From IMG/VR virus record IMGVR_UViG_3300042566_001780, positions 124,001-188,000 of that record: DNA of 64,000 nt. One strand, 5' to 3'. This document shows positions 16,814 through 57,293 of the stretch, piece after piece. A program made the translations under genes and the position numbers. The notes under the pieces were generated by a model. It searched no databases and had not been told where the DNA came from. It saw nothing but the letters and a program-made list of their open reading frames with translations. The first letter of the stretch is position 1. Each line of letters begins with the position of its first letter.

Positions 16814-17425
16814 ATGACCGAAATTAACTTAGATAACTCCCCACTGCAATTCATTGTTACTACTTTAGACGAAGAAGATCGACCCAAAATTGAATCTCAT
16901 TTACTACGTCTTTCTAAAGAAGATCGCTATTTGCGATTTTTTGCTGCACTTGGTGATTCCCAAATCAAACACTACGCTTCAACTATTGACCTGAAAAAGG
17001 GGAAGGCTTTCGGCATCATTACCCTGCCAGATCGCAAGCTGGTTGCATTAGCTCATGTATCTGAGATTGAAAAATCTGATCATAGAGTCATTGCAGAAAT
17101 GGGCGTCTCAGTTGATGCCGATGTTCGAGTTCAAGGCCTTGGAAAAAGACTGATGGATCGCACGGTGACTTACTGCCAAACCCATGGAATCAACACACTG
17201 TTTATGTCATGCTTGCGCGAGAACAAAGTCATGCAAAAGCTGGCAAAAGATTTTGATTTGCGGATTGTGCTTGACGCTGGAGAGGCCATGGCAGAACTTG
17301 ATTTGGATCCACTGGACAAAATGAAAGCCATGCCGAAAGAAATGCTATACCAGCAAATTTCTTTGTTTGACAAAGCATTCAAGCACAACAAAATGTTGAT
17401 CGATGCCGTTTTTAGTGTACAATAA
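16814..17425 (+). CDS. GNAT-family acetyltransferase
   Basis: DRYLRFF, AEMGVSVDADVRVQGLGKRLM (acetyl-CoA binding motif), ENKVMQKLA. Confidence 0.85.
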   Translation: MTEINLDNSPLQFIVTTLDEEDRPKIESHLLRLSKEDRYLRFFAALGDSQIKHYASTIDLKKGKAFGIITLPDRKLVALAHVSEIEKSDHRVIAEMGVSVDADVRVQGLGKRLMDRTVTYCQTHGINTLFMSCLRENKVMQKLAKDFDLRIVLDAGEAMAELDLDPLDKMKAMPKEMLYQQISLFDKAFKHNKMLIDAVFSVQ

Positions 17426-17915: not shown

Positions 17916-17992
17916 CGCCACTTAGCTCAGTTGGTCAGAGCAAGAGCTTCTAACACTCCAGGTCGCGGGTTCGAGCCCCGCAGTGGCGACCA
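17916..17992 (+). tRNA. tRNA with CUA anticodon (putative amber suppressor); anticodon stem has two mismatches
   Basis: Acceptor CGCCACT/AGTGGCG, A73, encoded CCA; D arm GCTC/GAGC; loop TT-CTA-AC at 17948-17954 in standard register; variable AGGTC; T arm GCGGG-TTCGAGC-CCCGC. Confidence 0.75.
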
Positions 17993-30000: not shown

Positions 30001-30935
30001 GCGCTGATGGCATCACCTGGCAAGTTAGCAATTCATTAGTTAGTACTGATTGGGGTAGAAATCCTATAACATCAATAGTTTGGGCTAATGGAAAATTCCA
30101 TATTTTTGGATATAATGGAAAGACCGCTTTTAGCTCGGACGGATTAACCTGGCAATTTAATAATAAAATTAGACTAACAGAATGGGGAATTGATAAAGAT
30201 ATTTTCTGCTCTTTTGCAAATGATGAAATCATTTACGCTGGGGGGACTGATGGATACCTAGTTTTTAGCGATGATTTTGTTGGTATTGAAATGCATTCCG
30301 ATTTCAATAATGGTGCAGATTCTGCCGTTATTGATTATCTAGTGACAGGATATTCCTCAAGAAACGAATATTTTAGTGTCAAAAAACAGCAAACTTTGAG
30401 TAAGGCTAAAACTGGAAATATTGCAACAGCCACATTTGGAGTAAACATTACTGGCCAAATAACACCAGCAAATGCAAGCACGTTTATTGCTAATACTGCA
30501 ATAGGAACTGCGCAAATTGCTGATGCAAGCGTAGAGACATTAAAGATTGCCGGTAATGCAGTTACCGTTCCGGCTTCAGCGTATACTGCCGCTGCATTTA
30601 CGCTGACTACAACATTTGCTGTTATTCAATCAGTTGTAGTTGATTTGCAGAGCGATATTCCGATACCAGTGATAATAACCTCATCATTTACTTTAAGTGG
30701 CGCAACGGTATCTCAGTTTAGAATTCTTCGTGGAACCACTGTGTTGTTTACATCTGGTGAAATAGTGCAGGGGACTGATGGCATAAATAAACCAACATCA
30801 CCTATTTCTATTGCTATTGGTGATACTGCTCCAATAGGAACGTCTACATATTACCTAGAAGCTAGATATGTAAGCGGGTTTACTGCTAGAACTGCCGCGA
30901 CTAGAAATCTAACAATATTAGGTGTAAAGAAATGA
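24093..30935 (+). CDS. Giant tail fibre / receptor-binding protein (2280 aa) with ILEI-like domain and about 30 Asp-box (BNR) repeats
   Basis: Three LSNExHV modules; ILEI/PANDER-like segment RGHKLVVLN...VVILTTYDA...SHAFIGQKG; about 30 copies of a ~44-aa unit KVATSPDGITWTYQSGLxSTAW...INWNGSQYLVxG. Confidence 0.8.
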   Translation: MPTLVSSGDITISDVNDGLNARLSNESHVIPTDADGLNGDFSGCSTTISVFVGPIDDSANWTITALASPGLTGTLAGRTYTVTALSGDIGYVDLTASKTGFPSITSRFSVSKAVAGTNGQDASQIAVVATQWDYRDDDAAWGIRINGTLQTGAARGHKLVVLNPATNTVSINQNYDTYGSVSNTDSLAAAISAVADGLVVILTTYDATQCNQNLRNALRLCGSESTETWATQRKSHAFIGQKGLPIGAAYEKTGFGTTSAGTSRVAAYFTTSGVVRNGSTAFNAVSAILSNEAHVFTASTAGVVASYVGSGTELRVYDGTVLLTYDGSGTLPGTWKFTNVASNITIGAISDSGAFATIGDHSGVADGVDTSSITYTITGKSLINSDFTLVKVQTFSKAKRGIEGDNAISVTLSNETHVFPATYTNIVSNYRNSGTEIQVLEGATELAYDAAGLTPGTWKVDTSSSNIVAGPVKKFILGDDWVFNDGMGSSGWGVNTAVTCIIWANNQFIAGGTNGKIATSSDGITWSVNENLSKTGWGDSVILDIIWTGVQYVLVGANATYSSDLSIWYANGSINSTAVATSSDGINWEYQPDLNLKTNNGALCIAWNGSKYVAGGQAGLIATSLDAKTWEISTNLSSTAWGTNVSGDSVDVLDINWNGSQFLAVGVLGRVATSPDGVTWTYQAGLTSTAWGTSLTGAVRSINWNGSQYVIVGQGGRVATSPNGITWTYQSGLASTAWGAGAIYSINWNGSQYIVVGASGKVATSPDGITWTYQSGITSVWGSSYDAFTVIWNGSKYVVGGVSGSVATSADGITWANQGGLAGTDKWLDSPVNSGTLLSRYAIIGGDGAKLAVRFNDEWEFQDAFAIKSAIDLTVLDFNGSQYIVGGTNATLAISSDGIYWTYQDGLANASWGTSATYDINWNGFQYMAVGAGGRVATSPDGITWTYQSSLASTTWATATAYSISWNGSQYVIVGTLGRVATSPDGITWTYQGGLASTTWSTATARCIVWNGSQYLVVGQSGRVATSPDGITWTYQGGLRATSWGTLDTVFDVHWNGSQYLVVGDSGKVATSPDGITWTNQTGLSSTTWGTVNEIYSIGWDGSQYVVCGMDGDIATSFDGITWKYQAGLWNTPWGALDYANSIIWDGTQFLVVGDNRKLATSVDGVNWKFKPNLSGWKNSGNVNHLANIDNTVYALGSAGNIACSNNLIDWTFLAPVGAVDIGAVSLTGIAKSANDTLCAIGSNNLVMVGNENQNLSLRLGYASINTRFFANTANKINWNGTQYLAVGNDASIATSVDGVTWVNQVGLISADWGISNINDVHWNGSQYVVVGNSGKVATSPDGITWTNQTGLSSTAWGIDDIFAVAWNGSQYIVGSNYGGIATSPDGITWTYRSGLASTTWGAAAVRAINWNGSQYLVAGASGKVATSPDGITWAYQGGLTSTTWGTTTAYFVNWNGSQYLIGGAAGRIATSPDGITWTYRSGLASTTWGSASTAIVYSINWNGSQYLVAGGSGKVATSPDGITWTYQSGLTSTAWSSSAVFSISWNGSQYLVVGELGKVASSTTGVSWVYGRRLTSTTWGGSDINDIVWNGSQYLVIGDSGKVATSTTGVSWSYQPLLQDTLWRSTNINAINWNGSQYLICGEGGAIATSPNGVTWTYQSGLTSTAWGTTAVYAINWNGSQYLIAGGSGKVATSPDGITWTNQTGLSSTAWGTNTIYSISWGGSQYVIAGNSGAIATSPNGVTWTYQGGLASTAWATSAVRSIVWNGSQYLVAGASGKVATSPNGVTWTYQGGLASTAWGAEIVYSISWNGSRYIVAGGDIGSTGKVATSSNGVTWTFADINNDSSSTPILTKSYYDGTRFILCSSGQLWFSTVGDISFLYPTWTITQALPAGSEWNTNTYASSIAWGNNVFCVVGEYGRVATSVDGNIWIHQELLNSIGGWNYSNINQVIFANGVFCIIGDYGNTAISADGITWQVSNSLVSTDWGRNPITSIVWANGKFHIFGYNGKTAFSSDGLTWQFNNKIRLTEWGIDKDIFCSFANDEIIYAGGTDGYLVFSDDFVGIEMHSDFNNGADSAVIDYLVTGYSSRNEYFSVKKQQTLSKAKTGNIATATFGVNITGQITPANASTFIANTAIGTAQIADASVETLKIAGNAVTVPASAYTAAAFTLTTTFAVIQSVVVDLQSDIPIPVIITSSFTLSGATVSQFRILRGTTVLFTSGEIVQGTDGINKPTSPISIAIGDTAPIGTSTYYLEARYVSGFTARTAATRNLTILGVKK
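25570..30290 (+). repeat. Tandem ~132-bp coding repeats within the tail fibre gene
   Basis: Near-identical blocks, e.g. GCAACTAGCCCAGATGGAATAACTTGGACATATAGAAGTGGATTAGCAAGCACAACGTGGGG at about 28237 and 28500. Boundaries are approximate. Confidence 0.85.
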
Positions 30936-41044: not shown

Positions 41045-41129
41045 CCATCAGATGCCAAACTGGTTATGGCACTCGACTTTTAATCGAGCGCGTTACGCTT
41101 TGTGGGTTCGAGTCCCACCTGATGGACCA
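41045..41129 (+). tRNA. tRNA-Lys(UUU) with long variable arm
   Basis: CCATCAG/CTGATGG, A73, CCA; CTCGA-CTTTTAA-TCGAG; variable arm CGCGTTACGCTTT. Confidence 0.85.
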
Positions 41130-41137
41130 AAGTTTTT

Positions 41138-41213
41138 GCCTGTTTAGCTCAGTTGAGAGAGCAAAATGTTGATAACGTTTAGGTCGCTGGTTTGAGTCCA
41201 GCAACAGGCACCA
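41138..41213 (+). tRNA. tRNA-Ile(GAU)
   Basis: GCCTGTT/AACAGGC, CCA; AAATG-TTGATAA-CGTTT. Confidence 0.9.
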
Positions 41214-41219
41214 AAAAAT

Positions 41220-41304
41220 GTCGCGTGTTGGCTGCTGGTAACGGCCCTCACCCTTTCAAGGTGACGTCTTTATGACTGCGGTTCGATTCCGCCACGCGAC
41301 GCCA
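41220..41304 (+). tRNA. tRNA-Glu(UUC) with long variable arm
   Basis: GTCGCGT/ACGCGAC, G73, CCA; TCACC-CTTTCAA-GGTGA; variable arm CGTCTTTATGAC. Confidence 0.85.
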
Positions 41305-41310
41305 AGTTAT

Positions 41311-41382
41311 TGGGGGATTGTCATCTGGTGATGACATTGCGCTTTGACCGCAAGAAGGTGGGTTCGATCCCCACTCCCCTTG
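41311..41382 (+). tRNA. tRNA-Gln(UUG), no encoded CCA
   Basis: TTGCG-CTTTGAC-CGCAA; T arm GTGGG-TTCGATC-CCCAC; 1-72 mismatch. Confidence 0.8.
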
Positions 41383-41430
41383 CACTTGACATAATTGTTC
41401 TCCTATAAATAGAGTATAAGGAGAACAATT

Positions 41431-42099
41431 ATGCAAAAAACACAAAAGAAATATCATTATATTTATAAAACAACTTGTCTAATTACTAAAAAATTTTATA
41501 TAGGCATGCACTCAACTGATAACTTAAATGATGGTTATCTTGGAAGTGGAAAGATTCTTAGTTATTCTATTGCCAAATATGGTAAGGCCAATCATGTTTG
41601 CGAAATTTTAGAATATCTACCTAATAGAGAAGCACTAAACGATCGTGAAAAAGAAATAGTAAATGAGGATTTATTAAATCATCCATTAAATATTAATCTT
41701 GTATATGGTGGTTCTGGTGGAACTCATGGAAAAGAGGCCGAGGTATGGGCAAGACCGGGGTATAAAGAAAGAGTAGCTATTTCTTTATCTAATGCGATGA
41801 AAAAACGTTGGTTACATATAGAATATGCAAATAAAATTAGTTTGCATAGGAAAATACTTTGGACTAATGATGAATATCGAAACAATATGCTTGTTGTTTT
41901 GCGATCGGCTTTTTTGGGAAAACAACACACTGCAAAAAGCAAAGCATTAATTGGTGAAAAAAATTCAATAAGTCAATTAGGATCAAAGAATTCCCAGTTT
42001 GGAACTTGCTGGATTACTAATGGAATAAAACCAATTAAAATAAAGAAAGAGTGTCTTGACGAATATTTGGTGAAGGGGTATCGTTTAGGAAGAAAATAA
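41431..42099 (+). CDS. Seg-like GIY-YIG homing endonuclease inside the tRNA cluster
   Basis: YHYIYKTTCLITKKFYIGMHSTDNLNDGYLGSG; NUMOD3-like GKQHTAKSKALI; own TATAAATA promoter at 41404. Confidence 0.88.
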   Translation: MQKTQKKYHYIYKTTCLITKKFYIGMHSTDNLNDGYLGSGKILSYSIAKYGKANHVCEILEYLPNREALNDREKEIVNEDLLNHPLNINLVYGGSGGTHGKEAEVWARPGYKERVAISLSNAMKKRWLHIEYANKISLHRKILWTNDEYRNNMLVVLRSAFLGKQHTAKSKALIGEKNSISQLGSKNSQFGTCWITNGIKPIKIKKECLDEYLVKGYRLGRK

Positions 42100-42124
42100 T
42101 TTGTTCATGTTTAGTGTTATTTGC

Positions 42125-42197
42125 TGGCCGGTAGCTCAGTTGGTAGAGTGTCGGGTTGTTACCCCGGGTGTCGCGAGTTCGAATCTTGCCCGGCCAG
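42125..42197 (+). tRNA. tRNA-Asn(GUU), no encoded CCA
   Basis: TGGCCGG/CCGGCCA, G73; TCGGG-TTGTTAC-CCCGG. Confidence 0.88.
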
Positions 42198-42210
42198 CAA
42201 ATAGCATTAT

Positions 42211-42288
42211 AGGGGAGTAGCTCAATTGGCAGAGCGCTGGTCTCCAAAACCAGAGGCTGTTCCGGTTCAAATCCGACCTCCCCTGCCA
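42211..42288 (+). tRNA. tRNA-Trp(CCA)
   Basis: AGGGGAG/CTCCCCT, G73, CCA; CTGGT-CTCCAAA-ACCAG; irregular T stem. Confidence 0.85.
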
Positions 42289-42343
42289 ATAATTATAACT
42301 TCGATCATCAAAATTTGGTGATGATGGAGATTTTAAAAACAAT

Positions 42344-42419
42344 CTGCACTTAGCTGTTCTGGTGAAAGCATGGCGCTGAAAACGCCGGGAGACTGGTTCG
42401 ATCCCAGTAGTGCAGGCCA
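42344..42419 (+). tRNA. tRNA-Phe(GAA)
   Basis: CTGCACT/AGTGCAG, CCA; TGGCG-CTGAAAA-CGCCG. Confidence 0.85.
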
Positions 42420-42426
42420 AAATTAT

Positions 42427-42500
42427 GGTGTTGGTAAGATAGTGGTAGTCCGCCTGTCTGTGAAACAGGAAGCGAGGGTTCGATTCCCCCCTTCACCCCA
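42427..42500 (+). tRNA. tRNA-His(GUG), degenerate
   Basis: CCTGT-CTGTGAA-ACAGG; two T-T mismatches in the acceptor; T rather than G at -1. Confidence 0.7.
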
Positions 42501-42507
42501 AAATAAT

Positions 42508-42583
42508 GCCAATGAAGCAATCTGGTGATTGCACCTGACTGTCGATCAGGTTCAGGCGAGTTCGATCCTCGTCATTGGCGCCA
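42508..42583 (+). tRNA. tRNA-Asp(GUC)
   Basis: GCCAATG/CATTGGC, G73, CCA; CCTGA-CTGTCGA-TCAGG. Confidence 0.88.
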
Positions 42584-42588
42584 TTCAT

Positions 42589-42663
42589 GGTTCATTGGCC
42601 GAGAGGCGAGGCAACTTCTTCATGCGGAGTCCTACAGTAGTTCGAATCTACTATGAACCACCA
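42589..42663 (+). tRNA. tRNA with CAU anticodon (Met or Ile2)
   Basis: GGTTCAT/ATGAACC, A73, CCA; ACTTC-TTCATGC-GGAGT. Confidence 0.8.
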
Positions 42664-42667
42664 AAAA

Positions 42668-42741
42668 GCCCCTGTAGTTCAATGAAAGAACACACCTTTG
42701 GTACGGGTGAGAAGACAGTTTGATTCTGTCCTTGGGCACCA
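42668..42741 (+). tRNA. tRNA-Thr(GGU), degenerate
   Basis: CACCT-TTGGTAC-GGGTG; acceptor has two mismatches; CCA encoded. Confidence 0.7.
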
Positions 42742-42790
42742 ATCTTTTGCTAAATAGATCCTATGTAGCCTTTTCGTAGGAGAAACACTC

Positions 42791-43387
42791 ATGCTAGTTA
42801 GCGAGCTTTTTGAAGCAAGAAACCCAAAATTAACCTATACCGAGAAACAAGTCAAGAAGGTCTTAGACCGGGTGACCGTTGAATTGACTGGAAATGAGAG
42901 TGGCGTTATGTCACGTTTAACTACTCGTTATTCCCGTTTAGACAAAGCTGCAAAATTAATGCAGGAAAAGCGTAATGCTCTAAACGAGGAAATGAAGCAA
43001 GTAGCAGAAAGCTTGTTTGATGCTCAAGATGAAGTGTTGACTCGTGTTGTGGATACGGTGTCATACACCATTACTTTGTCTAAAGCAGAAAAGGCAGAAT
43101 CAAAATCCCCAACCAAAAAAGTTGATTATTCTGCAGTGGTAAAAGAGCTTGCTCAGATGTTGCCTGAATTACAAGAAAAGATCGACCAAATCACTGAGCA
43201 ATACACCGAAATTATTCAACCAAAAGATACCCCGGTTAAGTTAATTGTTAAGTCAAAACTTGATGAAGGATTCACCGCTTTTGCAAAATCTTTAGTCAAG
43301 TCATTCAAAGAAATGCTGAAATCTATCAAATCTTGGGGTAAGGATTATGATAAGAGATTGGCTGCTTTGAAGAAACAGACATCATGA
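42791..43387 (+). CDS. Late helical protein, probable internal head protein
   Basis: CTAAATA at 42750; RBS AGGAG; start MLVSELFEA; internal KLDEGF. Confidence 0.7.
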   Translation: MLVSELFEARNPKLTYTEKQVKKVLDRVTVELTGNESGVMSRLTTRYSRLDKAAKLMQEKRNALNEEMKQVAESLFDAQDEVLTRVVDTVSYTITLSKAEKAESKSPTKKVDYSAVVKELAQMLPELQEKIDQITEQYTEIIQPKDTPVKLIVKSKLDEGFTAFAKSLVKSFKEMLKSIKSWGKDYDKRLAALKKQTS

Positions 43388-44100
43388 AACTTAGACAATT
43401 GCTTGAAAGCCAATCTCAATTTCTTCAAACAAGAGAAGAGATTGAAGCATGGCTCCAAAAGATGAAAATTGAAAACTACACCATTAGAAATGATCTTATG
43501 GTAGATGTTGATGGGGATGTTAACCTTTCTTTTAAAGGCTTATCATTCATTCCAGTCCAATTTTTCACAGTTATTGGAAATTTTTGGTGTTCACATAATC
43601 AATTAACATCACTCGACGGAGCACCTAGAGAAGTTGGCAGAGATTTTGAATGCGGTGAAAATGAGTTAACTTCTCTTAAGGGAGCACCTAGGGAAGTTGG
43701 TGGAGATTTTGATTGTTCTCATAATCAATTAACATCTCTTAAGGGAGCACCAAAAGATGTTGGCAAAGATTTTGATTGCAGCAATAATCAATTAACATCT
43801 CTTAAGGGTGCACCTAGAGAAGTGGGCGGAAATTTTTGGTGTTCACATAATCAATTAACATCACTCGACGGAGCACCAAGAGAGATAGGCGGTCATTTTA
43901 ATTGCAGCACAAATCAATTAACATCTCTTGAAGGTGCTCCAAGAGAAGTAGGCGGAAGTTTTTATTGTAGATGGAATAAATTAACTTCCCTTGAAGGTGC
44001 ACCTAGAGAAGTTGGTGGAAGTTTCAATTGTACTGGTAATGAATTGGCTTCATTAGATGGCATTGGAAATGTCACAGGTCAAATTTATTCGGATCTCTAA
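43384..44100 (+). CDS. Leucine-rich repeat protein 1 (eight 21-aa units)
   Basis: MKLRQLLES cap, then repeats of NQLTSLxGAPREVGGxFxCxx. Confidence 0.85.
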   Translation: MKLRQLLESQSQFLQTREEIEAWLQKMKIENYTIRNDLMVDVDGDVNLSFKGLSFIPVQFFTVIGNFWCSHNQLTSLDGAPREVGRDFECGENELTSLKGAPREVGGDFDCSHNQLTSLKGAPKDVGKDFDCSNNQLTSLKGAPREVGGNFWCSHNQLTSLDGAPREIGGHFNCSTNQLTSLEGAPREVGGSFYCRWNKLTSLEGAPREVGGSFNCTGNELASLDGIGNVTGQIYSDL

Positions 44101-44101
44101 A

Positions 44102-44572
44102 ATGAAGCTAAAACAATTATTTGAAAATAGCAATAACCAATTTCTTCAAACCCGAGAAGAAATTGAGACATGGCTCCAAAAGATGAAAATTAGAAACTAC
44201 ACCATCAGAGATGATCTGATGGTAGATGTTGATGGTAATGTAGATTTAAGTAAAAAGAATTTATCATTTATTCCAGTCAAATTTTGGGAAGTTGGTGGAG
44301 ATTTTGATTGTTCTCATAATCAATTAACATCACTCAATGGTGCTCCCAGAGAAGTTGGTGGAAGTTTTTGGTGTGGCCGTAATCAATTAACATCTCTTAA
44401 GGGAGCACCTAGAGAAGTTGGTAGAGGTTTTTTCTGCTATAACAATCAATTAACATCTATTGAAGGTGCTCCCAGAGAAGTAGGCGCGGATTTTAACTGC
44501 AGATTTAATAAATTAACATCTCTTGATGGCATTGGTAATGTAGGTGGCCAGATTTATTCGGATCTATCATGA
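44102..44572 (+). CDS. Leucine-rich repeat protein 2 (about four units)
   Basis: Start moved to ATG 44102 (MKLKQLFEN); close paralogue of protein 1. Confidence 0.85.
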   Translation: MKLKQLFENSNNQFLQTREEIETWLQKMKIRNYTIRDDLMVDVDGNVDLSKKNLSFIPVKFWEVGGDFDCSHNQLTSLNGAPREVGGSFWCGRNQLTSLKGAPREVGRGFFCYNNQLTSIEGAPREVGADFNCRFNKLTSLDGIGNVGGQIYSDLS

Positions 44573-45330
44573 AATTAAGACAATTATTTGAAAATAGCAA
44601 TACCCAATTTCTTCAAACTAGAGAAGAAATTTCTAATTGGTTGCTCGACAATACCATTCTCAAACCTCATGATTTCCAAATCAATGCCGATTTAACTGTT
44701 GACGTTTTTTCTAGCTTCAAAATCTTCATGTCAGCATGGGATTATGATTTGTACCGGCTGCCAGTGCGATTTGGATATTGCACTGGCAGTTTTGCACTAT
44801 CTCGTATAGCAAATCTACAAACATTAGAAGGTTGTCCAACCCATGTTGAAGGCTCTTTCTTTTGTGAAAGAACAGGCATCCAGGACCTCCAGGGTGCTCC
44901 CAGGGAAGTCGGTGGAGATTTCTTTTGTGGCTATTCAGAATCTCTAATGTCACTCGTGGGTGCTCCAGATAAGGTTGGAAGAAACTTTAAATGCAATAAT
45001 TGCCCTGATTTAGAATCTCTAGAGGGCGGTCCTTCTGAAGTTGGCTATGACTACAATTGCTCTTATAATGCATTGCGATCCTTAGTCGGAGCTCCTAGAG
45101 AAATAGGTGGTGAATTTGACTGCTCAAATAATGAATTATTTTCTCTAAAGGGAGCGCCTAGGGATGTTGGTCTTTCATTTGATTGCGCAAATAATAATTT
45201 GACATCATTGAAGGGTGCTCCATTGCACATAGGCGAAGATCTTATAGCTTGGGGAAATCAAATCGCCGGTTCTGCAAATTACGGCTATACACCCCGATCT
45301 ATTGGCGGTGAAATAATCGGGGTTGAATAA
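44569..45330 (+). CDS. Leucine-rich repeat protein 3
   Basis: MKLRQLFEN start; the same repeat type, more diverged. Confidence 0.85.
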   Translation: MKLRQLFENSNTQFLQTREEISNWLLDNTILKPHDFQINADLTVDVFSSFKIFMSAWDYDLYRLPVRFGYCTGSFALSRIANLQTLEGCPTHVEGSFFCERTGIQDLQGAPREVGGDFFCGYSESLMSLVGAPDKVGRNFKCNNCPDLESLEGGPSEVGYDYNCSYNALRSLVGAPREIGGEFDCSNNELFSLKGAPRDVGLSFDCANNNLTSLKGAPLHIGEDLIAWGNQIAGSANYGYTPRSIGGEIIGVE

Positions 45331-46100
45331 TGAAATTAGTTGACTTGTTTGAATCAGAAGATGATTTTGATTTCACTACCAAAGATGGAATAGCAGAGTG
45401 GTTAAAAGTAAATTATATTTGGGAGTTTTATGACATTCATGATGACTTAAGTGTATCTGTTTTTGACAATGTCAATATCACAGTTCTTGGAAAAGACAAG
45501 TCAAAAATTCCAGTTAAGTTTAGAAAAGTATACGCATTTTTAACTGACGTACCAATTACCTCTCTTGAAAATTTTCCAGATTCAGCAAGAGAAATTATTA
45601 TTCAAAGTGCAAAAATAAAGAATTTGCAAGGAATCACCCAAGATACCTTTGCATATTCAATACAAGCATGTAAAGAGTTGGAATCTTTAGATGGATTGCC
45701 GCAAGAAGTTAATGGAAGCATTTACATTAACAGATGCCCAATTACTTCCTTAAAGGGATCACCATTAAGAATCGACGGAGATTTTTCTGTTGTTCGGTGT
45801 GGTTTAAAGTCGTTGAGATATGGCCCAAGAGAAGTCACTGGATTACTCGATATACGAAAAAATGAACTAACTTCACTAAAAGGATGTCCTGAAGGTGTTG
45901 ATTACATAGATGCCACATCTAATTTGATCACTAATTTGATTGGTGTTCCGGAATCAGCAGATGAACTCTATTTAACAGATAATCCTTTAGAATCTTTAGA
46001 AGGATTGCATGATGGTCGTATTGTTGTTAGATCTATAGGTGCTAATATTTCAAAAGACGAAAAATTGAAATACCCAAATGCCACAATTGTGACTGAATGA
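45330..46100 (+). CDS. Leucine-rich repeat protein 4
   Basis: MKLVDLFES start; LESLDGLP and LTSLKGCP repeats. Confidence 0.8.
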   Translation: MKLVDLFESEDDFDFTTKDGIAEWLKVNYIWEFYDIHDDLSVSVFDNVNITVLGKDKSKIPVKFRKVYAFLTDVPITSLENFPDSAREIIIQSAKIKNLQGITQDTFAYSIQACKELESLDGLPQEVNGSIYINRCPITSLKGSPLRIDGDFSVVRCGLKSLRYGPREVTGLLDIRKNELTSLKGCPEGVDYIDATSNLITNLIGVPESADELYLTDNPLESLEGLHDGRIVVRSIGANISKDEKLKYPNATIVTE

Positions 46101-46115
46101 AACTGGAGAAAAGTT

Positions 46116-47615
46116 ATGAAATTGAAAGAACTATTAGAATCATATGATGAATTTGACTTTTCTACCAAAGAAGGTATTTCTAATTGGCTAAAAGAAAAAG
46201 GCAACAGAATTGGCAATTACACTATACACGATGATTTGAGTGTATCATTCCATAGCACTGTTTATTGGCATTGGCTGGATGGGATTACTAAATTACCATT
46301 CAAAATTCGCGATGTTAATGGCACCTTTGAGCTCAATGACGTTCCATTAACTACCCTGGAAAATTTTCCAGATAACGCTAATACAATCCATCTTGAAAGT
46401 CTTGATATTGAAGACTTGACAGGAATTACCCAAACAGCAGAACGATATATTATCAAACACTGCCCTAATTTGAAAAGTCTAGATGGATTGCCGCCTCATG
46501 TAGAAGGCCTAGACCAATGGGCTGGAGTGTTTATTCATAATTCTGGAGTTGAAAGTTTAAGCGGAAGTCCAAGCACAATAAACGGCGATTTTGTTGTAAT
46601 TCGATGCAAATTGAAGTCACTCAAATACGGTCCCAGAGAAGTAACTGGTGAATATGACGTTGAATATAACCAGTTAGAATCGCTGAAACACAGCCCAAGA
46701 GCAGCAAGCCAACTATTAGTCGGATATAACAAAATAACATCTCTTAAGGGATGCACACCTGGTATTACTGTATTGAATATTGAGGGAAATCCAATATCTT
46801 CACTAGATGGATTGCCGGAATCTCTACATAATGATGGTATCGTGTATGCCGAGAGGACAAATATCAGTGATGAAGAAATAGCAAAATACCCAAATGGATT
46901 CTTCATCAAAGATCATGGAATGTTTGTTGCTGAAGGATGGAAAGAAAAAGCGCAAGTTGCGGGCGCAGCGGCATTAATGGCTACTGCTCTATTGGTGAAT
47001 CGCGGACCAGAGGAAGCCCCAAGTGATAGGGCAATTGCAGGAAAAATTGATCATTCTAACATTTCTGTAGAAAAACCAAAATTGAATAACAAATCGTCTG
47101 TCTTTAGTGGTTCAGCTAAAGTTCTTTATGATGAAGCGAAGAAGCAGGGTATACGCGGGGCAGAATTGATTCAATTGATTGCGCAATCTGCACATGAGAC
47201 TGCAAATTTTGGTAAGCTTATTGAGATGGGTAGTAAGGATTATTTCAAGAAATATGATCCCAAACATAACCCAAGGAAAGCCGAAATACTTGGAAATACT
47301 AAGGTTGGAGATGGTGAAAAATTTAAAGGTCGCGGTTTTCTCCAATTAACGGGTCGTGATGTTTATATGCGAGCTGGAAAAGCTTTAGGATTGCCACTAG
47401 AAGAGAAACCGGAATTGTTAGAAGATCCAAAGATTGGTGCTAAAGCGTCAATTTGGTTCTGGAAAACCAGGGTTCAGCCAAAGGTCAAAGATTTCTCTGA
47501 CGTTGAAGAAGTCACCCAATACATTAACCCGGGATTAAAGGGGTTATCTGATCGACAAAAGAAATTTCGAGAATTTTCTAATCTCTATAATCTAGAAACA
47601 AAAAAGTCAAAATGA
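46116..47615 (+). CDS. LRR protein 5 fused to a GH19 (chitinase/lysozyme) domain
   Basis: MKLKELLES; LRR units; hydrophobic linker; QSAHETANF, FKGRGFLQLTGR, ASIWFW, VTQYINPG GH19 motifs. Confidence 0.85.
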   Translation: MKLKELLESYDEFDFSTKEGISNWLKEKGNRIGNYTIHDDLSVSFHSTVYWHWLDGITKLPFKIRDVNGTFELNDVPLTTLENFPDNANTIHLESLDIEDLTGITQTAERYIIKHCPNLKSLDGLPPHVEGLDQWAGVFIHNSGVESLSGSPSTINGDFVVIRCKLKSLKYGPREVTGEYDVEYNQLESLKHSPRAASQLLVGYNKITSLKGCTPGITVLNIEGNPISSLDGLPESLHNDGIVYAERTNISDEEIAKYPNGFFIKDHGMFVAEGWKEKAQVAGAAALMATALLVNRGPEEAPSDRAIAGKIDHSNISVEKPKLNNKSSVFSGSAKVLYDEAKKQGIRGAELIQLIAQSAHETANFGKLIEMGSKDYFKKYDPKHNPRKAEILGNTKVGDGEKFKGRGFLQLTGRDVYMRAGKALGLPLEEKPELLEDPKIGAKASIWFWKTRVQPKVKDFSDVEEVTQYINPGLKGLSDRQKKFREFSNLYNLETKKSK

Positions 47616-47654
47616 GTTAGAATGAATAGAGTTTTTGTGAAGGTTCTATTCAAC

Positions 47655-48296
47655 ATGTCAGATCAATTGATTTCTTTGGAATTAACTGCGCAACAGTTTT
47701 ATCATTCAAAGTTCAACACATATCACAATTGGGAGCATATTTCTTATGTGCTTTCCCAATATAGAGCAATCTTCAAAAAAGATCCAAGCAAGACAGAATT
47801 TGCAGCCATTCTGTTTCACGATTGCATCTATGTACCAGGTTCTCCTCATGGAGTCAATGAAATGCTGAGTGCGATAACTGCATGTAAAGTTGTCAAGTTC
47901 TCAAACTTCAAAGACATTGATGTAGAGTTGTTAGAGAAAATTATTCTGGCTACGAAGGTCCAAAATTATTTAGATCCTGGATTCTATGATGAAGATTGCA
48001 ATCGCGTGCTGGATGCAGATGTCGCGTCGCTAGCTGCACCGTATGAAGATTTTTTGCAAAACAATGCAAATATCATTTTTGAGAATCATGGGCCCGTTCG
48101 ATTTGGGTATGAAATGGATATTTGCAGTTATGCTTCTGTTGAATTTCTGTTGAAACTTAGTTCAAGATTATACATTTACAGAACTCAAGAAGCGCGAGAA
48201 TTACTTGAGGAAAAAGCACGCGACAATATTGACAGGTTTAAACGAAATCCAAGAGACATCAATAGCTATTTGATTAAGTCTTCAGATTTTTGCTAA
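47655..48296 (+). CDS. HD-superfamily metal-dependent phosphohydrolase
   Basis: YHNWEHI...AILFHDCIY...LDADVASL; start moved to ATG 47655. Confidence 0.8.
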   Translation: MSDQLISLELTAQQFYHSKFNTYHNWEHISYVLSQYRAIFKKDPSKTEFAAILFHDCIYVPGSPHGVNEMLSAITACKVVKFSNFKDIDVELLEKIILATKVQNYLDPGFYDEDCNRVLDADVASLAAPYEDFLQNNANIIFENHGPVRFGYEMDICSYASVEFLLKLSSRLYIYRTQEARELLEEKARDNIDRFKRNPRDINSYLIKSSDFC

Positions 48297-48299
48297 TTT

Positions 48300-48623
48300 C
48301 TAGCAATCTTCTCCATTTGGTATGTTTTGATCATGCCACTCCCCTTCAATGCAATGCCTGATTTCGTGCAGAAGGCATCTAGGGTAATTTCGCAAATTAA
48401 TTATGCAAATTTTTTGTTGATTGACATCTATTAATCTAGCGGATCCTTGAATTTGGGGATTATTGAATCTACTAGGATCGGAATGAATAATTAGCCTGAA
48501 ATCGGAATGAACGATTTCGGGTTTTTTACTGGCACTGAATTGCGAATGACCAGTGCCCGCGCATGCAGTCAGAAGCACAATGAATAGAACAGATATGAAA
48601 TAATTCATAGGTGGGAATAGCAT
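48300..48623 (-). CDS. Small lipoprotein
   Basis: Lipobox LLTAC; HEIRH (HExxH-like) near the C-terminus. Confidence 0.6.
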   Translation of the reverse strand: MLFPPMNYFISVLFIVLLTACAGTGHSQFSASKKPEIVHSDFRLIIHSDPSRFNNPQIQGSARLIDVNQQKICIINLRNYPRCLLHEIRHCIEGEWHDQNIPNGEDC

Positions 48624-54741: not shown

Positions 54742-56556
54742 ATGGCAGATTTAAACACTTGTCCAAATGGGGCTGGATCAATTAACAATCCAGCAAATGC
54801 ATTACCTGAAATTCCGGCATATGTAGTACCTGAAATTCCAGATGTCAACTATTCAGTCACTGACTGTTTAGTTGACTCAAATATACAAGAGCAAATTGCA
54901 GTTGAGGCTCTCAATATCAGCGGAGCTCCGCTCAACATATTCAAGCTCCTAGGTGTTCATGAACAGGGCAAACTAATTGACTTAACAGGAAATGGTACTC
55001 CGCTTAATGGAAGTGATAATGTTTTTGATTCACTCGCATCTAATTGGGCATCTTCTCAAGTGGGAATGGCTGTGTTGACAACCCCATCATGGGTAGGATA
55101 TGATTTTGGTGTTATAAAAACGAGTTATGGATTGGACGCAAATGGACCTGGTATTGCAAACAATCAGCATATTACATCATTGAGAATTACTCAACCTGCT
55201 CAAAATAGACGGGCTCTTCAAATTAAAGTTGAACAATCTGATGGGCAATATTCATTATCCAGCCTAATCATTACTGGTTCTGGTACTGCTACTATTACTG
55301 ACTTCACCGCTGGGCCCAAATGCAAACCTGGTATATTTTCATTAGTAGCTGATGCAACTAATTCATTTACGGTTTTCTTTATTTCAGGTACCACTGAATT
55401 AGTCGGCATCTTAAAGCCTAATCTTAGATTCAATTCAAATTACGGATCATTCACGTTAACATCAAATTCCACTTTTGCCAATGGCGACATCATCACTGCA
55501 TCAATTCAATTGAAGTGGAATCGTGTTGATATTGTTAATTTAGTAGATGACGCTACAGCGCAGAATGTTCGCATTAAACAATCTAAGCCATCTCGCTATT
55601 GGAGAATAGTGCCTACATCATTTAGTGGTGTTGCTTTAAATGAGCCCTGGGAAATATCAAAGCTTGAGCTTTTTGATTATCAAACCACACGGCTTGATGA
55701 TATTCAGGATCCACTATTACTTGAGAATCGCGACCGTGATTATGCATCTCAATCAGTTCAATTAAAGGTTGCCTATCAACCAACTGATACTATATCTGAT
55801 CTATCCAAATTTGGATTTCAGATGACAGATAGTTTCACATTTACCGCAAGCTTTGCCCAAATGGTGAAATTACTTGGAAGGCCTATCGTAGTCGGTGACG
55901 TTTTAGAGCTTCCAAGTGAAATGCAATATGACCAAAATCTGAAACCGGTTAGAAAGTTCTTAGAAGTATCAGATACATCATGGGCGGCTGATGGGTATAC
56001 GACTGCCTGGAAACCGATTATGTATCGATTCCAAGCATCTCAGTTAATTCCATCTCAGGAACATCGCGACATTCTTGGCACCGTTGACACTCAGAAATTC
56101 CTTGTTGATGACGGTACTTTCCTTGATGGTATTGAACAAATTCAAACTGCTCCATTAACGATTTCGCAACAAGTAAAAACTGAAGCCTTACAAGAAGTAC
56201 CAGAAAAAGGTACGAACGTAACTGAAATTGCATCTGGTACTAGTCGATACGGTGAACCTGGTACTTATGATGGACGTGATCTTTATGTTGAAGATGGGTT
56301 ACCACCAGATGGGTTACCATATACCGAAGGCTTCAAACTCCCAGATGTAACTGATGCTTCTGATGGAGATTATTTCAGATTAAACTATGATCCAAAGATG
56401 AATATTGCTTCACGTCTTTACAAGTTTAGCTCAGTTAAAAATAAGTGGATTTATGTTGAAACTGATAGACGTCCTATTAATACTTCACACAAGCCTTCAC
56501 AATTACAAGTCATGCAACAACCTAAAGTCGTTTCCTTAGAAAGCAAAAACCTATGA
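54742..56556 (+). CDS. Neck protein (T4 gp14-like) with large insertions
   Basis: IAVEALNISGAPLNIFKL; DPLLLENRDRDY; LSKFGFQM...VGDVLELP; position between gp13 and gp15. Confidence 0.7.
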   Translation: MADLNTCPNGAGSINNPANALPEIPAYVVPEIPDVNYSVTDCLVDSNIQEQIAVEALNISGAPLNIFKLLGVHEQGKLIDLTGNGTPLNGSDNVFDSLASNWASSQVGMAVLTTPSWVGYDFGVIKTSYGLDANGPGIANNQHITSLRITQPAQNRRALQIKVEQSDGQYSLSSLIITGSGTATITDFTAGPKCKPGIFSLVADATNSFTVFFISGTTELVGILKPNLRFNSNYGSFTLTSNSTFANGDIITASIQLKWNRVDIVNLVDDATAQNVRIKQSKPSRYWRIVPTSFSGVALNEPWEISKLELFDYQTTRLDDIQDPLLLENRDRDYASQSVQLKVAYQPTDTISDLSKFGFQMTDSFTFTASFAQMVKLLGRPIVVGDVLELPSEMQYDQNLKPVRKFLEVSDTSWAADGYTTAWKPIMYRFQASQLIPSQEHRDILGTVDTQKFLVDDGTFLDGIEQIQTAPLTISQQVKTEALQEVPEKGTNVTEIASGTSRYGEPGTYDGRDLYVEDGLPPDGLPYTEGFKLPDVTDASDGDYFRLNYDPKMNIASRLYKFSSVKNKWIYVETDRRPINTSHKPSQLQVMQQPKVVSLESKNL

Positions 56557-57293
56557 GACTAAAAGAATTATTCGAAGACATTCATGTCATAAAGGATATC
56601 TGGACTAAGGAAGAAGCAGATGATCGAGTAGCCAATACTGCATTTCGGCTTGAAGATAAATGGAAAAAATATCCATCAAAAATAAAGTTTCCAGTCGAAA
56701 ACTTTGAAGTAGTTCAAGTTAGAAATGCTGGCATCATTATTGACTGGGAAATAGGTTTGCGTAACAAACTGAACGGGCAATTTGCTGCTATCTTGAATGC
56801 AGACCAGACCTCTATCAAAGTTGGCAAAAAGAAAATAGTTGGTAAAGCTACATCTGTTGCTTCAGTGAATGGCAATTATCTTGGTCAAGGACTAATGCAA
56901 AAGCTCTACCAATACTTGTCTGATAATGGAGAAATTCTATTCTCGTCAACAGACCAGTCTTTTGGTGGTAAAAAGCTATGGCAAAAATTTGTTCAGGAAA
57001 ACAACGAAAACACCTTCTTAGTGTTAGAACTGTTTGAGCATAGCTTTTCATTTGTTCAATCAAAAAATAGTTTTGGCAGATTAAGAAATGCTGAAGGAGT
57101 GTCACCACTTGAATTCTATGAAAAGAATAAGAGTAAAAATGGTGTAGCTCTCATCATCAAAGCTGATTATGACAAACTAATCAAACTTGCATATTTGAAG
57201 TCTTCGGGTAGTTTCAATCCAAGCTATTTTATGACACTGCCAAAAGGCCATCCCCTCATTAGCGAATTCAATTCAATAGCTTTCAGACCATGA
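56553..57293 (+). CDS. GNAT-like protein with MRLKELFE N-terminus
   Basis: YLGQGLMQKLYQYL...STDQSFGGKKLWQKF resembles GNAT motifs A/B. Confidence 0.55.
   Translation: MRLKELFEDIHVIKDIWTKEEADDRVANTAFRLEDKWKKYPSKIKFPVENFEVVQVRNAGIIIDWEIGLRNKLNGQFAAILNADQTSIKVGKKKIVGKATSVASVNGNYLGQGLMQKLYQYLSDNGEILFSSTDQSFGGKKLWQKFVQENNENTFLVLELFEHSFSFVQSKNSFGRLRNAEGVSPLEFYEKNKSKNGVALIIKADYDKLIKLAYLKSSGSFNPSYFMTLPKGHPLISEFNSIAFRP

Follow-up and report, generated by a model that had tools for sequence, protein, structure and literature searches.

A tandem family of leucine-rich-repeat proteins in a T4-related jumbo phage: candidate head-packaged binders for delivery into the host

An uncultured T4-related jumbo phage from lake water, with a genome of at least 292 kb, encodes 15 paralogous leucine-rich-repeat (LRR) proteins, five of them in a tandem operon in the window, i.e. 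the whole stretch of 64,000 nucleotides analysed here. Nearly all of these paralogues begin with a short peptide that resembles the capsid-targeting sequence (CTS) of T4 internal head proteins, and we propose, with a probability slightly below one half (about 0.45), that the LRR proteins would be binders packaged in the phage head and delivered into the host. The original prediction had already spoken of injected proteins, and three features of the genome favour this idea: the CTS-like peptide, which 13 of the 15 paralogues carry, a prohead protease of the T4 type and a motif resembling a late promoter. The gp23-type capsid protein of the phage is nearest to those of RsoM2USA/XacN1/Rak2-like phages, and four of the 15 paralogues lie directly after the gp23-type capsid gene, within the head-gene block.

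The tandem array of five LRR paralogues reported earlier is confirmed as five co-oriented open reading frames (ORFs) (Table 1); the start given for it (43384) stands, whereas the end (46950) falls short of the fifth gene, which reaches 47615. Gene 1 is absent from the gene calls of the source annotation, and the start chosen for gene 2 agrees with its gene call there. The genes would form one late-transcribed operon, leading from the CTAAATAG motif through ORF198 and LRR genes 1–5 to the HD hydrolase gene, which is probably its last gene. The product of ORF198 is helical, matches no Pfam or PHROG family and is 99.5% identical to its orthologue in the related strain L013 (dN/dS 0.01).

Table 1. 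The operon, its surroundings and the prohead protease gene (positions in the window unless preceded by G000).
Feature	Position	Strand	Remarks
11-tRNA cluster	41045..42741	+	directly upstream of operon; interrupted by homing endonuclease gene
SegB-like GIY-YIG homing endonuclease	41431-42099		inside tRNA cluster; 39% identity to T4 SegB, E 1e-36
CTAAATAG late-promoter-like motif	42750..42757	+	33 nt 5' of ORF198
ORF198	42791..43387	+	first gene of operon; starts MLVSELFEA; ATGA overlap with gene 1
LRR paralogue 1	43384..44100	+	238 aa; MKLRQLLE↓S peptide, N-cap, 7 canonical 21-aa units, C-cap
Exact 50-bp block	43576..43625	+	recurs at 43828-43877; encodes GNFWCSHNQLTSLDGAP, face residues included
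Exact 46-bp block, gene 1	43691..43736	+	same in gene 2 at 44286-44331
LRR paralogue 2	44102..44572	+	156 aa; ATG at 44102; MKLKQLFE↓N peptide, N-cap, 3 canonical units, C-cap
LRR paralogue 3	44569..45330	+	253 aa; units more degenerate
LRR paralogue 4	45330..46100	+	256 aa; degenerate units
Gene 5, whole ORF	46116-47615	+	499 aa
Gene 5, N-terminal part	46116..46910	+	MKLKELLE↓S peptide and LRR domain, aa 1-265
Gene 5, hydrophobic helix, EGWKEKAQVAGAAALMATALLVNR	46932..47003	+	aa 273-296; Gly/Ala-rich
Gene 5, GH19 muramidase/chitinase-like domain	47109..47600	+	aa 332-495
HD-type phosphohydrolase gene	47655..48296	+	downstream; phrog_19425; 92% identity in L013
Intrinsic-terminator-like hairpin, then T run	48493..48523	+	consensus scan only
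Prohead protease gene	G000 70238-70864

The proteins follow a common plan: an N-terminal peptide of 8–9 residues, a helical/beta N-cap, three to eight bacterial-type LRR units and a C-cap. An HMM built from the gene 1 units and run on the 15 paralogues gives 99 ungapped units with the 21-aa consensus NxLTSLxGAPxxVGGxFxCxx, in which F17, C19, N1, L3 and L6 occupy the canonical LRR positions L4, L6, N9, L11 and L14. According to Tandem Repeats Finder, gene 1 contains 7.0 copies of a 63-nt period and gene 2 contains 3.1; the number of units does differ between genes, but as seven versus three canonical units plus caps rather than the eight versus about four counted before. Structure prediction and structural comparison bear out the identification as LRR proteins. 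The AF2 model of gene 1 (pLDDT 94.9) has regular strands every 21 residues, and the top 50 Foldseek matches to it are all LRR proteins, the best being the LRR domains of YopM, IpaH and SspH (E 1e-5 to 1e-3, TM about 0.6, 16–34% identity). Pfam LRR_4 (cut-off 27) scores 32.6 bits for gene 1, 21.5 for gene 2 and 24.5 for gene 5, with nothing for genes 3 and 4. YopM, IpaH and SspH1/2, which represent the short ‘bacterial’ LRR class, likewise combine repeats of 20–22 residues with an N-terminal helical cap, and the LRR domain of these effectors binds host proteins. Unlike them, the present proteins have no secretion signal, show the convex-side consensus LxGAPxxVGG instead of LPxLPxxL and are encoded by a phage of bacteria, with Atlas neighbours almost all from Uroviricota; Pfam finds no NEL E3-ligase domain in the five, genes 1–4 ending in the LRR C-cap and gene 5 in GH19.

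Entropy calculated for each position peaks at 18, 21, 20, 2 and 16 of the unit (the x residues of x-F-x-C-x-x-N-x) and lowest at L3, L6, G8, P10, V13 and F17; the most variable residues thus sit in the canonical concave-face register, as had been claimed. Among the units of genes 1 and 2, dN/dS is 0.74 on the face and 0.02 on the scaffold, at a dS of about 0.9–1.2. The per-site comparison that had been suggested therefore places the face above the scaffold, but nowhere does dN/dS exceed 1, and the face can be called hypervariable relative to the scaffold, not in absolute terms.

The strict motif MKLxxL(L/F/Y)E(S/N) starts 13 of the 15 paralogues and is found after only 3 of 3590 Met positions in non-family ORFs; a looser pattern occurs in 12 of 15 family members versus 9 of 380 other ORFs (≥100 aa). 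T4 IPII and IPIII start with MKTYQEFIAE↓A (read from AF158101), and 19 of the 120 best metagenomic homologues start with MK(Y/H)LKTYQLFE(S/A) or a close variant, e.g. MKYLKTYQLFE. The paralogue peptide resembles the T4 CTS MKTYQEFIAE, as a short, low-information motif of 8–9 residues and not by statistical homology. CTSs of T4 are propeptides of 10–20 residues that are cut after Glu, the internal proteins that carry them are diverse and have only the CTS in common, and IPI* blocks GmrSD (PMC9026906, PMC3012670, PMC5694885).

Model confidence for the peptide is low (pLDDT 67 in gene 1, <50 in gene 5), and one paralogue (G000 190661-191842) has about 150 residues between peptide and N-cap. The peptide is also present on three non-LRR ORFs, and a peptide of the same kind starts 60 of 119 GH19-domain homologues, mostly ahead of non-LRR N-domains. 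Its separability from the LRR domain, its occurrence on unrelated ORFs and on many non-LRR GH19 fusions and its CTS-like character favour a signal over a structural helix; and since a peptide like that of T4 head packing stands on nearly all paralogues, delivery into the host is possible. LRR homologues in some other phages are without it, and only about 14–33% of family members elsewhere have it, which counts against a role in packaging. The phage encodes a T4-type (gp21-family) prohead protease (PF03420, 95.1 bits, G000 70265-70729), and in its capsid protein LVE↓T stands immediately before the stretch aligned with the N-terminus of mature T4 gp23. An S77 protease domain occurs in both 100%-complete IMG/VR genomes with KTYQ-type LRR genes (2/2); against packaging speaks Vibrio phage VB_VaC_TDDLMA, where such a protease is accompanied by an LRR gene without the peptide. 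As many large myoviruses have proteases of the gp21 type, a protease beside LRR genes is weak evidence.

Under the proposed mechanism, the N-terminal peptide would act as a T4-CTS-like signal that brings the protein into the prohead scaffolding core, the gp21-type protease of the phage would cut it off after Glu, and the mature, mostly acidic LRR solenoids would leave the head with the DNA; in the host, the concave face of each paralogue would bind its own specific target, a host or phage protein. The likeness to T4 IPI, IPII and IPIII extends from the short N-terminal MK-hydrophobic...E peptide common to otherwise diverse proteins to the gp21-family protease, the late-type promoter motif, the presence in variable regions of several genes that are paralogous or diverse, and the proximity of a lysozyme-type domain and of a tRNA cluster that includes a segB(-like) gene. 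The T4 arrangement, in which tRNAs and segB are flanked by ipI and by e/ipIII/ipII, matches. In contrast to T4, however, sequence similarity ends at the peptide, which has 8–9 residues here and 10–19 there, and the putative cargo consists of LRR solenoids of 16–55 kDa instead of small globular proteins.

The CTAAATAG motif occurs in 42 copies in the genome versus 17 expected, and 31 of these lie 5–100 nt 5' of a same-strand gene start (random positions, 5.9%; p 1e-29). CTAAATA has been proposed, from sequence analysis, as the late promoter of the T4-like phage Aeh1 (PMC1524935). Additionally, the motif heads the LRR genes at G000 75025, 190661 and 261187 and is found 5' of the prohead protease, baseplate wedge, tail tube, tail fibre, neck protein and endolysin genes; the operon may be transcribed late, together with the head genes. 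A run search that did not target RNA showed no RNA run containing the stretch. A late promoter suits any virion or lysis protein, not internal ones specifically.

The motif also precedes the genes for a gp32-like ssDNA-binding protein and a plain GH19 endolysin and is therefore not specific to virion proteins, which lends weight to an intracellular alternative: the LRR proteins would be expressed late and stay unpackaged, acting in the infected cell, for example as assembly or lysis adaptors, regulators or host-factor binders, the peptide being a mere conserved N-terminal helix and gene 5 a membrane-tethered (SAR-like) endolysin regulated or localised by its cytoplasmic LRR domain. The weakly hydrophobic, Gly/Ala-rich helix ahead of GH19 in gene 5 is SAR-typical, genes 3–5 are under ordinary purifying selection, and many family members elsewhere lack the peptide. 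This account is at odds with the occurrence of the CTS-like peptide independently of LRR domains, with the plain canonical GH19 endolysin that the genome already encodes separately from gene 5, and with the four paralogues in the head-gene block, and we regard it as unlikely, although to be taken seriously.

Gene 5 itself can be accommodated by head packaging. Its AF2 model has pLDDT 81–94 over residues 10–265 and a helix at 275–293. Across eight homologues (alignment A2), EGWKEKAQVAGAAALMATALLVNR does not vary, and this set includes five with an overall identity to gene 5 of only ~50%; a related EEGWKDWVAGAALGAAAL motif precedes GH19 domains in many non-LRR fusion proteins. The C-terminal third matches PF00182 (41.8 bits, cut-off 25.5) and phrog_181 (endolysin; E 2.9e-33). 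Among PDB structures it is closest to the PWe2 endolysin (9ms7, E 5e-19), whose AHES aligns with an AHET motif retained in gene 5; by these matches, the domain is a GH19 family member and a predicted muramidase. An AHE(S/T)-bearing GH19 domain after a hydrophobic helix recalls phage GH19 endolysins and muralytic ejection proteins, with the difference from the endolysins that gene 5 adds an N-terminal LRR domain and the CTS-like peptide. T7 gp16 is a virion-borne muralytic ejection protein, and the helix and GH19 muramidase of gene 5 would fit an ejected membrane- and wall-active protein.

GH19 domains of some phages are annotated within tail or baseplate proteins, and the LRR proteins could instead be accessory adhesins or host-recognition modules on the virion surface, their concave faces binding varied cell-surface structures and GH19 aiding wall penetration from outside. 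The late-type promoter motif would suit such a role, as would the strain variability of genes 1–2, often seen in receptor-binding genes, and Goslar DUF7941 fibre proteins with LRR and GH modules set a precedent. In these, a constant N-terminal module is followed by LRR, GH or carbohydrate-binding domains, and host recognition has been proposed (bioRxiv 10.64898/2026.04.21.720040). The family described here is similarly a multi-paralogue jumbo-phage family with a constant N-terminal element before LRR/GH modules; however, it has no DUF7941, its constant element is a 9-residue peptide plus the LRR domain's own N-cap, and Goslar (Chimalliviridae) belongs to another phage lineage. Moreover, beyond the first 8–9 residues, the proteins are all LRR solenoid and caps, with no anchoring or oligomerisation domain, and the LRR part matches no Pfam or PHROG tail/fibre family. 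The unpaired core Cys carried by every unit and the mostly acidic pI do not suggest an extracellular protein, and it is difficult to see where on a virion surface the hydrophobic helix within gene 5 would sit. We consider a surface location quite improbable.

As to how the set of candidate binders arose, both repeated blocks named in the original prediction are real: the 50-bp block at 43576 and 43828 is exactly identical, and the block common to genes 1 and 2, estimated at ~40 bp, measures 46 bp (43691 and 44286). The two 50-bp copies have 0 mismatches, compared with a median of 15 mismatches when 55 pairs of units are compared in register (column-permutation test, p about 0.0065), and the interpretation of the exact blocks as traces of gene conversion or unit duplication is supported. 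Comparison with relatives divides the array. Between related strains, remodelling is confined to genes 1–2: the 7- and 3-unit genes are swapped in position, lineages A and B depart from the window in both the number of repeats and the order of these genes, and identity across strains is 64–72%, with a face dN/dS of about 0.9. Genes 3–5, on the other hand, are stable, being conserved orthologues under purifying selection in two other lineages (dN/dS 0.06–0.15), with face positions also conserved between strains (face dN/dS 0.13). Relative to the L013 orthologues, gene 3 is 88% identical (dN/dS 0.15) and gene 4 is 85% identical (dN/dS 0.11); dN/dS is 0.05 for the LRR part of gene 5 (aa 1–265) versus its orthologue. 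Binding surfaces thus appear to be kept in genes 3–5, not continually diversified, and the unit dS, near saturation, indicates that most units are old.

A programmed, recombination-driven hypervariable repertoire, VLR-like or the target of a DGR, would account for the face codons carried in exact blocks between units and between genes, for the varying repeat number and order of genes 1–2 and for gene R2 of a related strain, which has two identical consecutive units. It is nevertheless largely refuted, and we give it hardly any credence: inter-unit synonymous divergence marks most units as old, lineages A and B have the same gene architecture and a 99% identical position-2 gene, faces of genes 3–5 are conserved, dN/dS on the face is nowhere above 1, silent donor cassettes were not seen, and no reverse transcriptase (PF00078) was matched in 291,687 bases (~18% of the genome being missing), while control genomes matched. 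Lamprey VLRs share the LRR scaffold and the focusing of variability on concave-face positions, but the phage genes differ in having no somatic assembly or donor cassettes, old units and strain-conserved orthologues. What survives of the predicted recombination-diversified repertoire is therefore the traces of gene conversion and unit duplication, not VLR-like diversification; the family would have evolved through duplication of whole genes in tandem and of single units, together with gene conversion over short tracts, and with fast turnover in genes 1–2.

By analogy, head packaging could be taken further, to the doubtful but conceivable proposal that freshwater T4-related jumbo phages pack a whole set of LRR ‘effectors’ by means of a portable CTS-like tag and deliver them with the DNA, each LRR protein neutralising or redirecting a host protein (e.g. 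a defence sensor); the inhibitors of host defence named in the original prediction are a pure conjecture. If this were true, LRR delivery by phage would parallel the type III secretion of LRR effectors, and the tag, the EGWK hydrophobic helix and GH19 would constitute a general delivery chassis on which cargo domains are swapped.

The record is a 291,687-bp IMG/VR virus sequence from a lake-water metagenome (CheckV completeness estimate 82%), of which the window spans bases 124001-188000. On its gene content, the source is an uncultured jumbo phage and a distant relative of T4, because its major capsid protein is of the T4 gp23 type (PF07068, 297 bits) and its prohead protease of the T4 gp21 type (PF03420, 95 bits), and because the closest cultured capsid proteins are those of Ralstonia phage RsoM2USA (53%), Stenotrophomonas phages CM1 and RAS14, Xanthomonas phage XacN1, and the Rak2/121Q group (40%). 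One tRNA has the amber-suppressor anticodon CUA (ARAGORN label tRNA-Pyl); TAG is the least common stop (32 of 362 crude gene calls) yet in use, and the genes studied here are all readable without recoding. A 2280-codon ORF lies in a region of unusually high GC skew (0.22–0.25 at 26–30 kb).

Coordinates of the features discussed (window positions unless a source is named)
Feature	Position	Strand	Remark
LRR gene 1	43384-44100		genes 1–5 co-oriented, closely packed
LRR gene 2	44102-44572
LRR gene 3	44569-45330
LRR gene 4	45330-46100
LRR gene 5	46116-47615
Operon's first gene (ORF198)	42791-43387
CTAAATAG copies	42750, 50148, 52796, 63570, 21445	+
SegB-like GIY-YIG homing endonuclease gene	41431-42099		inside tRNA cluster directly upstream; 39% identical to T4 SegB, E 1e-36
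tRNA (CUA)	17916-17992
2280-codon ORF	24093-30935
Non-LRR ORF with peptide-like start	56553-57293
Non-LRR ORFs with peptide-like starts, whole record	5872-6402, 16895-17170, 288926-289624
Exact repeat, 50 bp	43576 and 43828
Exact repeat, 46 bp	43691 and 44286
EGWKEKAQVAGAAALMATALLVNRG in gene 5	46932-47003		aa 273-296
Position-2 gene of the related strain, contig L013	1213-1941

Three of the gene junctions in the array are overlaps of 1–4 bases or a 1-base gap. All five proteins are built from a 21-residue unit with the consensus NxLTSLxGAPxxVGGxFxCxx, which Tandem Repeats Finder registers as a 63-nt period, and among the five genes Pfam LRR_4 rises above threshold in gene 1 only. AF2 models gene 1 with very high confidence (pLDDT 94.9), and the solved structures that match this model best are short-repeat LRR domains, from YopM, IpaH, and SspH. 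Gene 1 is an intact 238-codon ORF that is uncalled in the source record's annotation, and its exact protein is missing from the protein collection. Neither a megablast search with the array (50,697 phage records) nor IMG/VR searches with the two flanking genes and the single proteins P0086 and P0115 returned a match.

The genome carries 15 paralogues in four regions (75–80 kb, 167–172 kb [the array], 190–197 kb, and 257–262 kb of the record), the first group lying immediately downstream of the genes for portal, protease, scaffold, and capsid. Clustered at 50% identity, a library of 1.84 billion proteins contains 22,447 representatives that match this LRR type at E ≤ 0.001 and 12,394 that do so at 1e-10; the closest Atlas clusters are nearly all Uroviricota ‘hypothetical proteins’, and tandem LRR arrays occur on other large phage contigs (L039, L040, and LR756501). 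The LRR type is both very common and unannotated. A Pfam scan of ten long proteins of the type (525–680 aa) found no informative partner domain. In a tree of the N-terminal heads, resolution is poor outside the gene 3–5 orthologue pairs.

The operon may be expressed late. The motif CTAAATAG, most likely the late promoter of the phage, is present in 42 copies (17 expected). In 31 of them a gene on the same strand starts 5–100 nt further downstream (5.9% expected, p 1e-29), and 35 fall inside the non-coding 5% of the genome. It stands ahead of virion genes (prohead protease, baseplate wedge, tail tube, tail fibres, a head-decoration-like protein, and a gp13-like neck protein), ahead of a plain GH19 endolysin, and ahead of ORF198 at the operon head, three other LRR loci, and one peptide-bearing non-LRR ORF. 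For the T4-like phage Aeh1, CTAAATA has been proposed as late promoter by sequence analysis (PMC1524935). Sigma-70-type promoters at the locus show no excess over chance (18 found, 18.6 expected).

Thirteen of the 15 paralogues start with MKL(x)xxL(L/F/Y)E(S/N), a peptide whose strict form only three other ORFs in the genome carry; of 3590 Met positions in ORFs outside the family, 3 are followed by it. This peptide lies outside the LRR fold, because it is the sole low-confidence part of both models (genes 1 and 5), because about 150 residues separate it from the N-cap in one paralogue, because LRR genes of other lineages begin right at the N-cap, and because other homologues have a similar peptide ahead of a different N-cap. 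Starts of the kind MK(Y/H)LKTYQLFE(S/A) occur in 19 of the best 120 homologues. Four non-LRR ORFs have peptide-like starts (MRLKELFED, MKLTDLFET, MKIRELIEG, and MKLLKELLEG), one of them sitting among neck genes, and ORF198 starts with MLVSELFEA. The three strict-motif non-LRR ORFs have no PHROG match, and one also lacks a Pfam match.

Injected internal proteins of T4 are the classic case of phage counter-defence delivered ahead of any phage gene expression; to our knowledge, almost nothing is known of packed or injected proteins in large phages beyond its close relatives. The T4 proteins IPII and IPIII begin with MKTYQEFIAE|A and IPI with MKTFKEF (from AF158101). In T4, segB likewise lies within a tRNA cluster, with ipI on one side and e, ipIII, and ipII on the other. 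In the capsid protein of the present phage, LVE|T stands just before the segment aligned with the N-terminus of mature T4 gp23; gp23 of T4 is cleaved after residue 65. Capsid-targeting sequences (CTSs) of T4 are propeptides of 10–20 residues that bring otherwise unrelated proteins into the prohead core and are removed by gp21 after Glu; T-even internal proteins are diverse except for the CTS, and one of them, IPI*, inhibits GmrSD (PMC9026906, PMC3012670, PMC5694885).

The reading we favour, at a probability of about 0.45, is that the LRR proteins are late products which the peptide would tag for the prohead, which the gp21-type protease would process, and which would enter the host together with the DNA, each protein recognising a specific partner by its concave face; from packaging onward, this is what we infer. 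Both complete IMG/VR carriers of peptide-type LRR genes (2/2) have an S77 protease; the protease also occurs in Vibrio phage VB_VaC_TDDLMA, whose LRR gene is untagged. A predicted complex of the prohead protease with gene 2 scored 0.00, with controls absent, and speaks neither for nor against binding.

Gene 5 runs to a later end than the original prediction gave it and comprises an LRR domain (aa 1–265), a hydrophobic helix, a disordered linker, and a GH19 muramidase-like domain. On the favoured reading, its combination of LRR domain, membrane helix, and wall hydrolase would suit the role of an ejected, envelope-active protein. CTS-like peptides (MRxxEFIxE, MRLQELLE(T/N), MRFTDLKET) also stand at the start of 60 of 119 homologues of its GH19 domain, and the N-domains of these are mostly non-LRR. 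Many metagenomic proteins (within P0130–P0248), several on contigs of 290–345 kb, have a common modular order of M(R/K)xx(E/D/Q)(L/F/I)xxE peptide, variable N-domain, Gly/Ala-rich hydrophobic helix (‘EEGWK(D/E)W/K..AGAA.GAAAL’), PQ-rich linker, and GH19. Within the LRR subfamily, the 25 residues EGWKEKAQVAGAAALMATALLVNRG do not vary even among proteins that are only ~50% identical overall. Among cultured phages in the collection searched, the EGWK-helix-GH19 arrangement is absent. Alternatively, the LRR proteins would be late products that are not packaged and act inside the cell, with gene 5 as a tethered or SAR-like lysin; we hold this possible, at clearly lower odds than packaging and injection. 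That the proteins are external adhesins, as proposed for the DUF7941-LRR/GH proteins of Goslar, we consider improbable.

The original prediction had described a hypervariable concave face and identical repeat blocks, and both are borne out, the variability relative to the scaffold. Across 99 units, entropy peaks at unit positions 18, 21, 20, 2, and 16, which are the x residues of x-F-x-C-x-x-N-x, i.e. canonical LRR positions x3, x5, x7, x8, and x10, forming the concave face and its ascending edge; in the gene 1 model, DSSP assigns a strand to F17-x18 of each unit. Genes 1 and 2 have ten canonical units between them, with dN/dS of 0.74 at face positions vs 0.02 at scaffold positions; dS of ~0.9–1.2 marks these units as old rather than recent copies. 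The median number of mismatches is 15, but the 50-bp pair has 0 (permutation p ~0.0065). This pair and the 46-bp pair are most readily explained as short tracts of gene conversion or partial duplication, which carried face codons along.

Syntenic loci of relatives were recovered from several metagenome assemblies (ENA accessions) by exact-protein look-up of the flanking ORF198 and fall into lineages A (L013, L015–L017) and B (L019 and L020). In both, ORF198 is followed by genes of 155, 242, and 251 aa, and the longer lineage A contig L013 continues with genes of 256 and 495 aa (GH19), compared with 198, 238, 156, 253, 256, and 499 aa in the window. Genes 3, 4, and 5 are clear orthologues (protein identity 88, 85, and 88%; dN/dS 0.15, 0.11, and 0.06; dS 0.43–1.06). 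Their face positions are conserved (pooled dN/dS 0.13 vs 0.07 elsewhere in the genes), which argues for fixed binding partners. The first 90 nt of genes 1 and 2 pair by position with the relatives (88 and 82%, respectively); the bodies do not, position 1 having seven units in the window vs three in the relatives and position 2 the reverse. Best overall identity for genes 1 and 2 is only 64–72%, face dN/dS is ~0.9, and the face-residue sets differ. Lineages A and B share one architecture, with position-2 genes 99% identical. In the L013 copy of the position-2 gene, NNQLTSLKGAPREVGGSFYCS occurs twice in succession as identical 21-residue units, which suggests that a unit was duplicated very recently.

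In short assembler contigs from three further freshwater runs (X2–X4), joints and skips occur only at ~43500-44560, single low-depth X4 contigs excepted, which is suggestive of array variation confined to that interval. Across 42791-48296, strain divergence from these runs is a mosaic (the X2 strain is identical across 46376-46738 and 46881-48300, and 2–7% different in genes 3 and 4 and ORF198), which suggests recombination between co-occurring strains.

The array thus evolves by birth-and-death with unit duplication and conversion, concentrated in genes 1 and 2. Of the original proposal of a recombination-diversified repertoire resembling VLRs, the duplication and conversion traces and the remodelling of genes 1 and 2 stand; the age of the units, the conservation of genes 3–5, and the lack of a reverse transcriptase in the 82%-complete record speak against the rest. 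Whole-gene dN/dS is below 1 in every pair (0.06–0.21, dS being saturated for genes 1 and 2), and with dN/dS above 1 not reached and face residues of genes 3–5 conserved, VLR-like diversification is very unlikely. The same old units, conserved genes, and absence of a reverse transcriptase from that record, together with the stability between lineages A and B, speak against programmed hypervariation. Host-dependent variation of the partners would be consistent with the turnover of genes 1 and 2, although no pair gave a dN/dS above 1.

LRR proteins, CTS-tagged internal proteins of T4, and GH19 lysins are each already known. Our literature searches found no paper on a phage-specific LRR multigene family with a CTS-like tag, on an architecture of tag, cargo, EGWK-helix, and GH19, or describing LRR internal proteins of phages. 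If the peptide is a packaging tag, sequence alone could suffice to identify injected proteins throughout a large group of uncultured jumbo phages, and the LRR family, if tagged and injected, would supply natural protein binders with targets that could point towards host defence or physiology. Should packaging prove wrong, the array still offers a clean contrast between fast-turnover (genes 1 and 2) and stable (genes 3–5) LRR paralogues.
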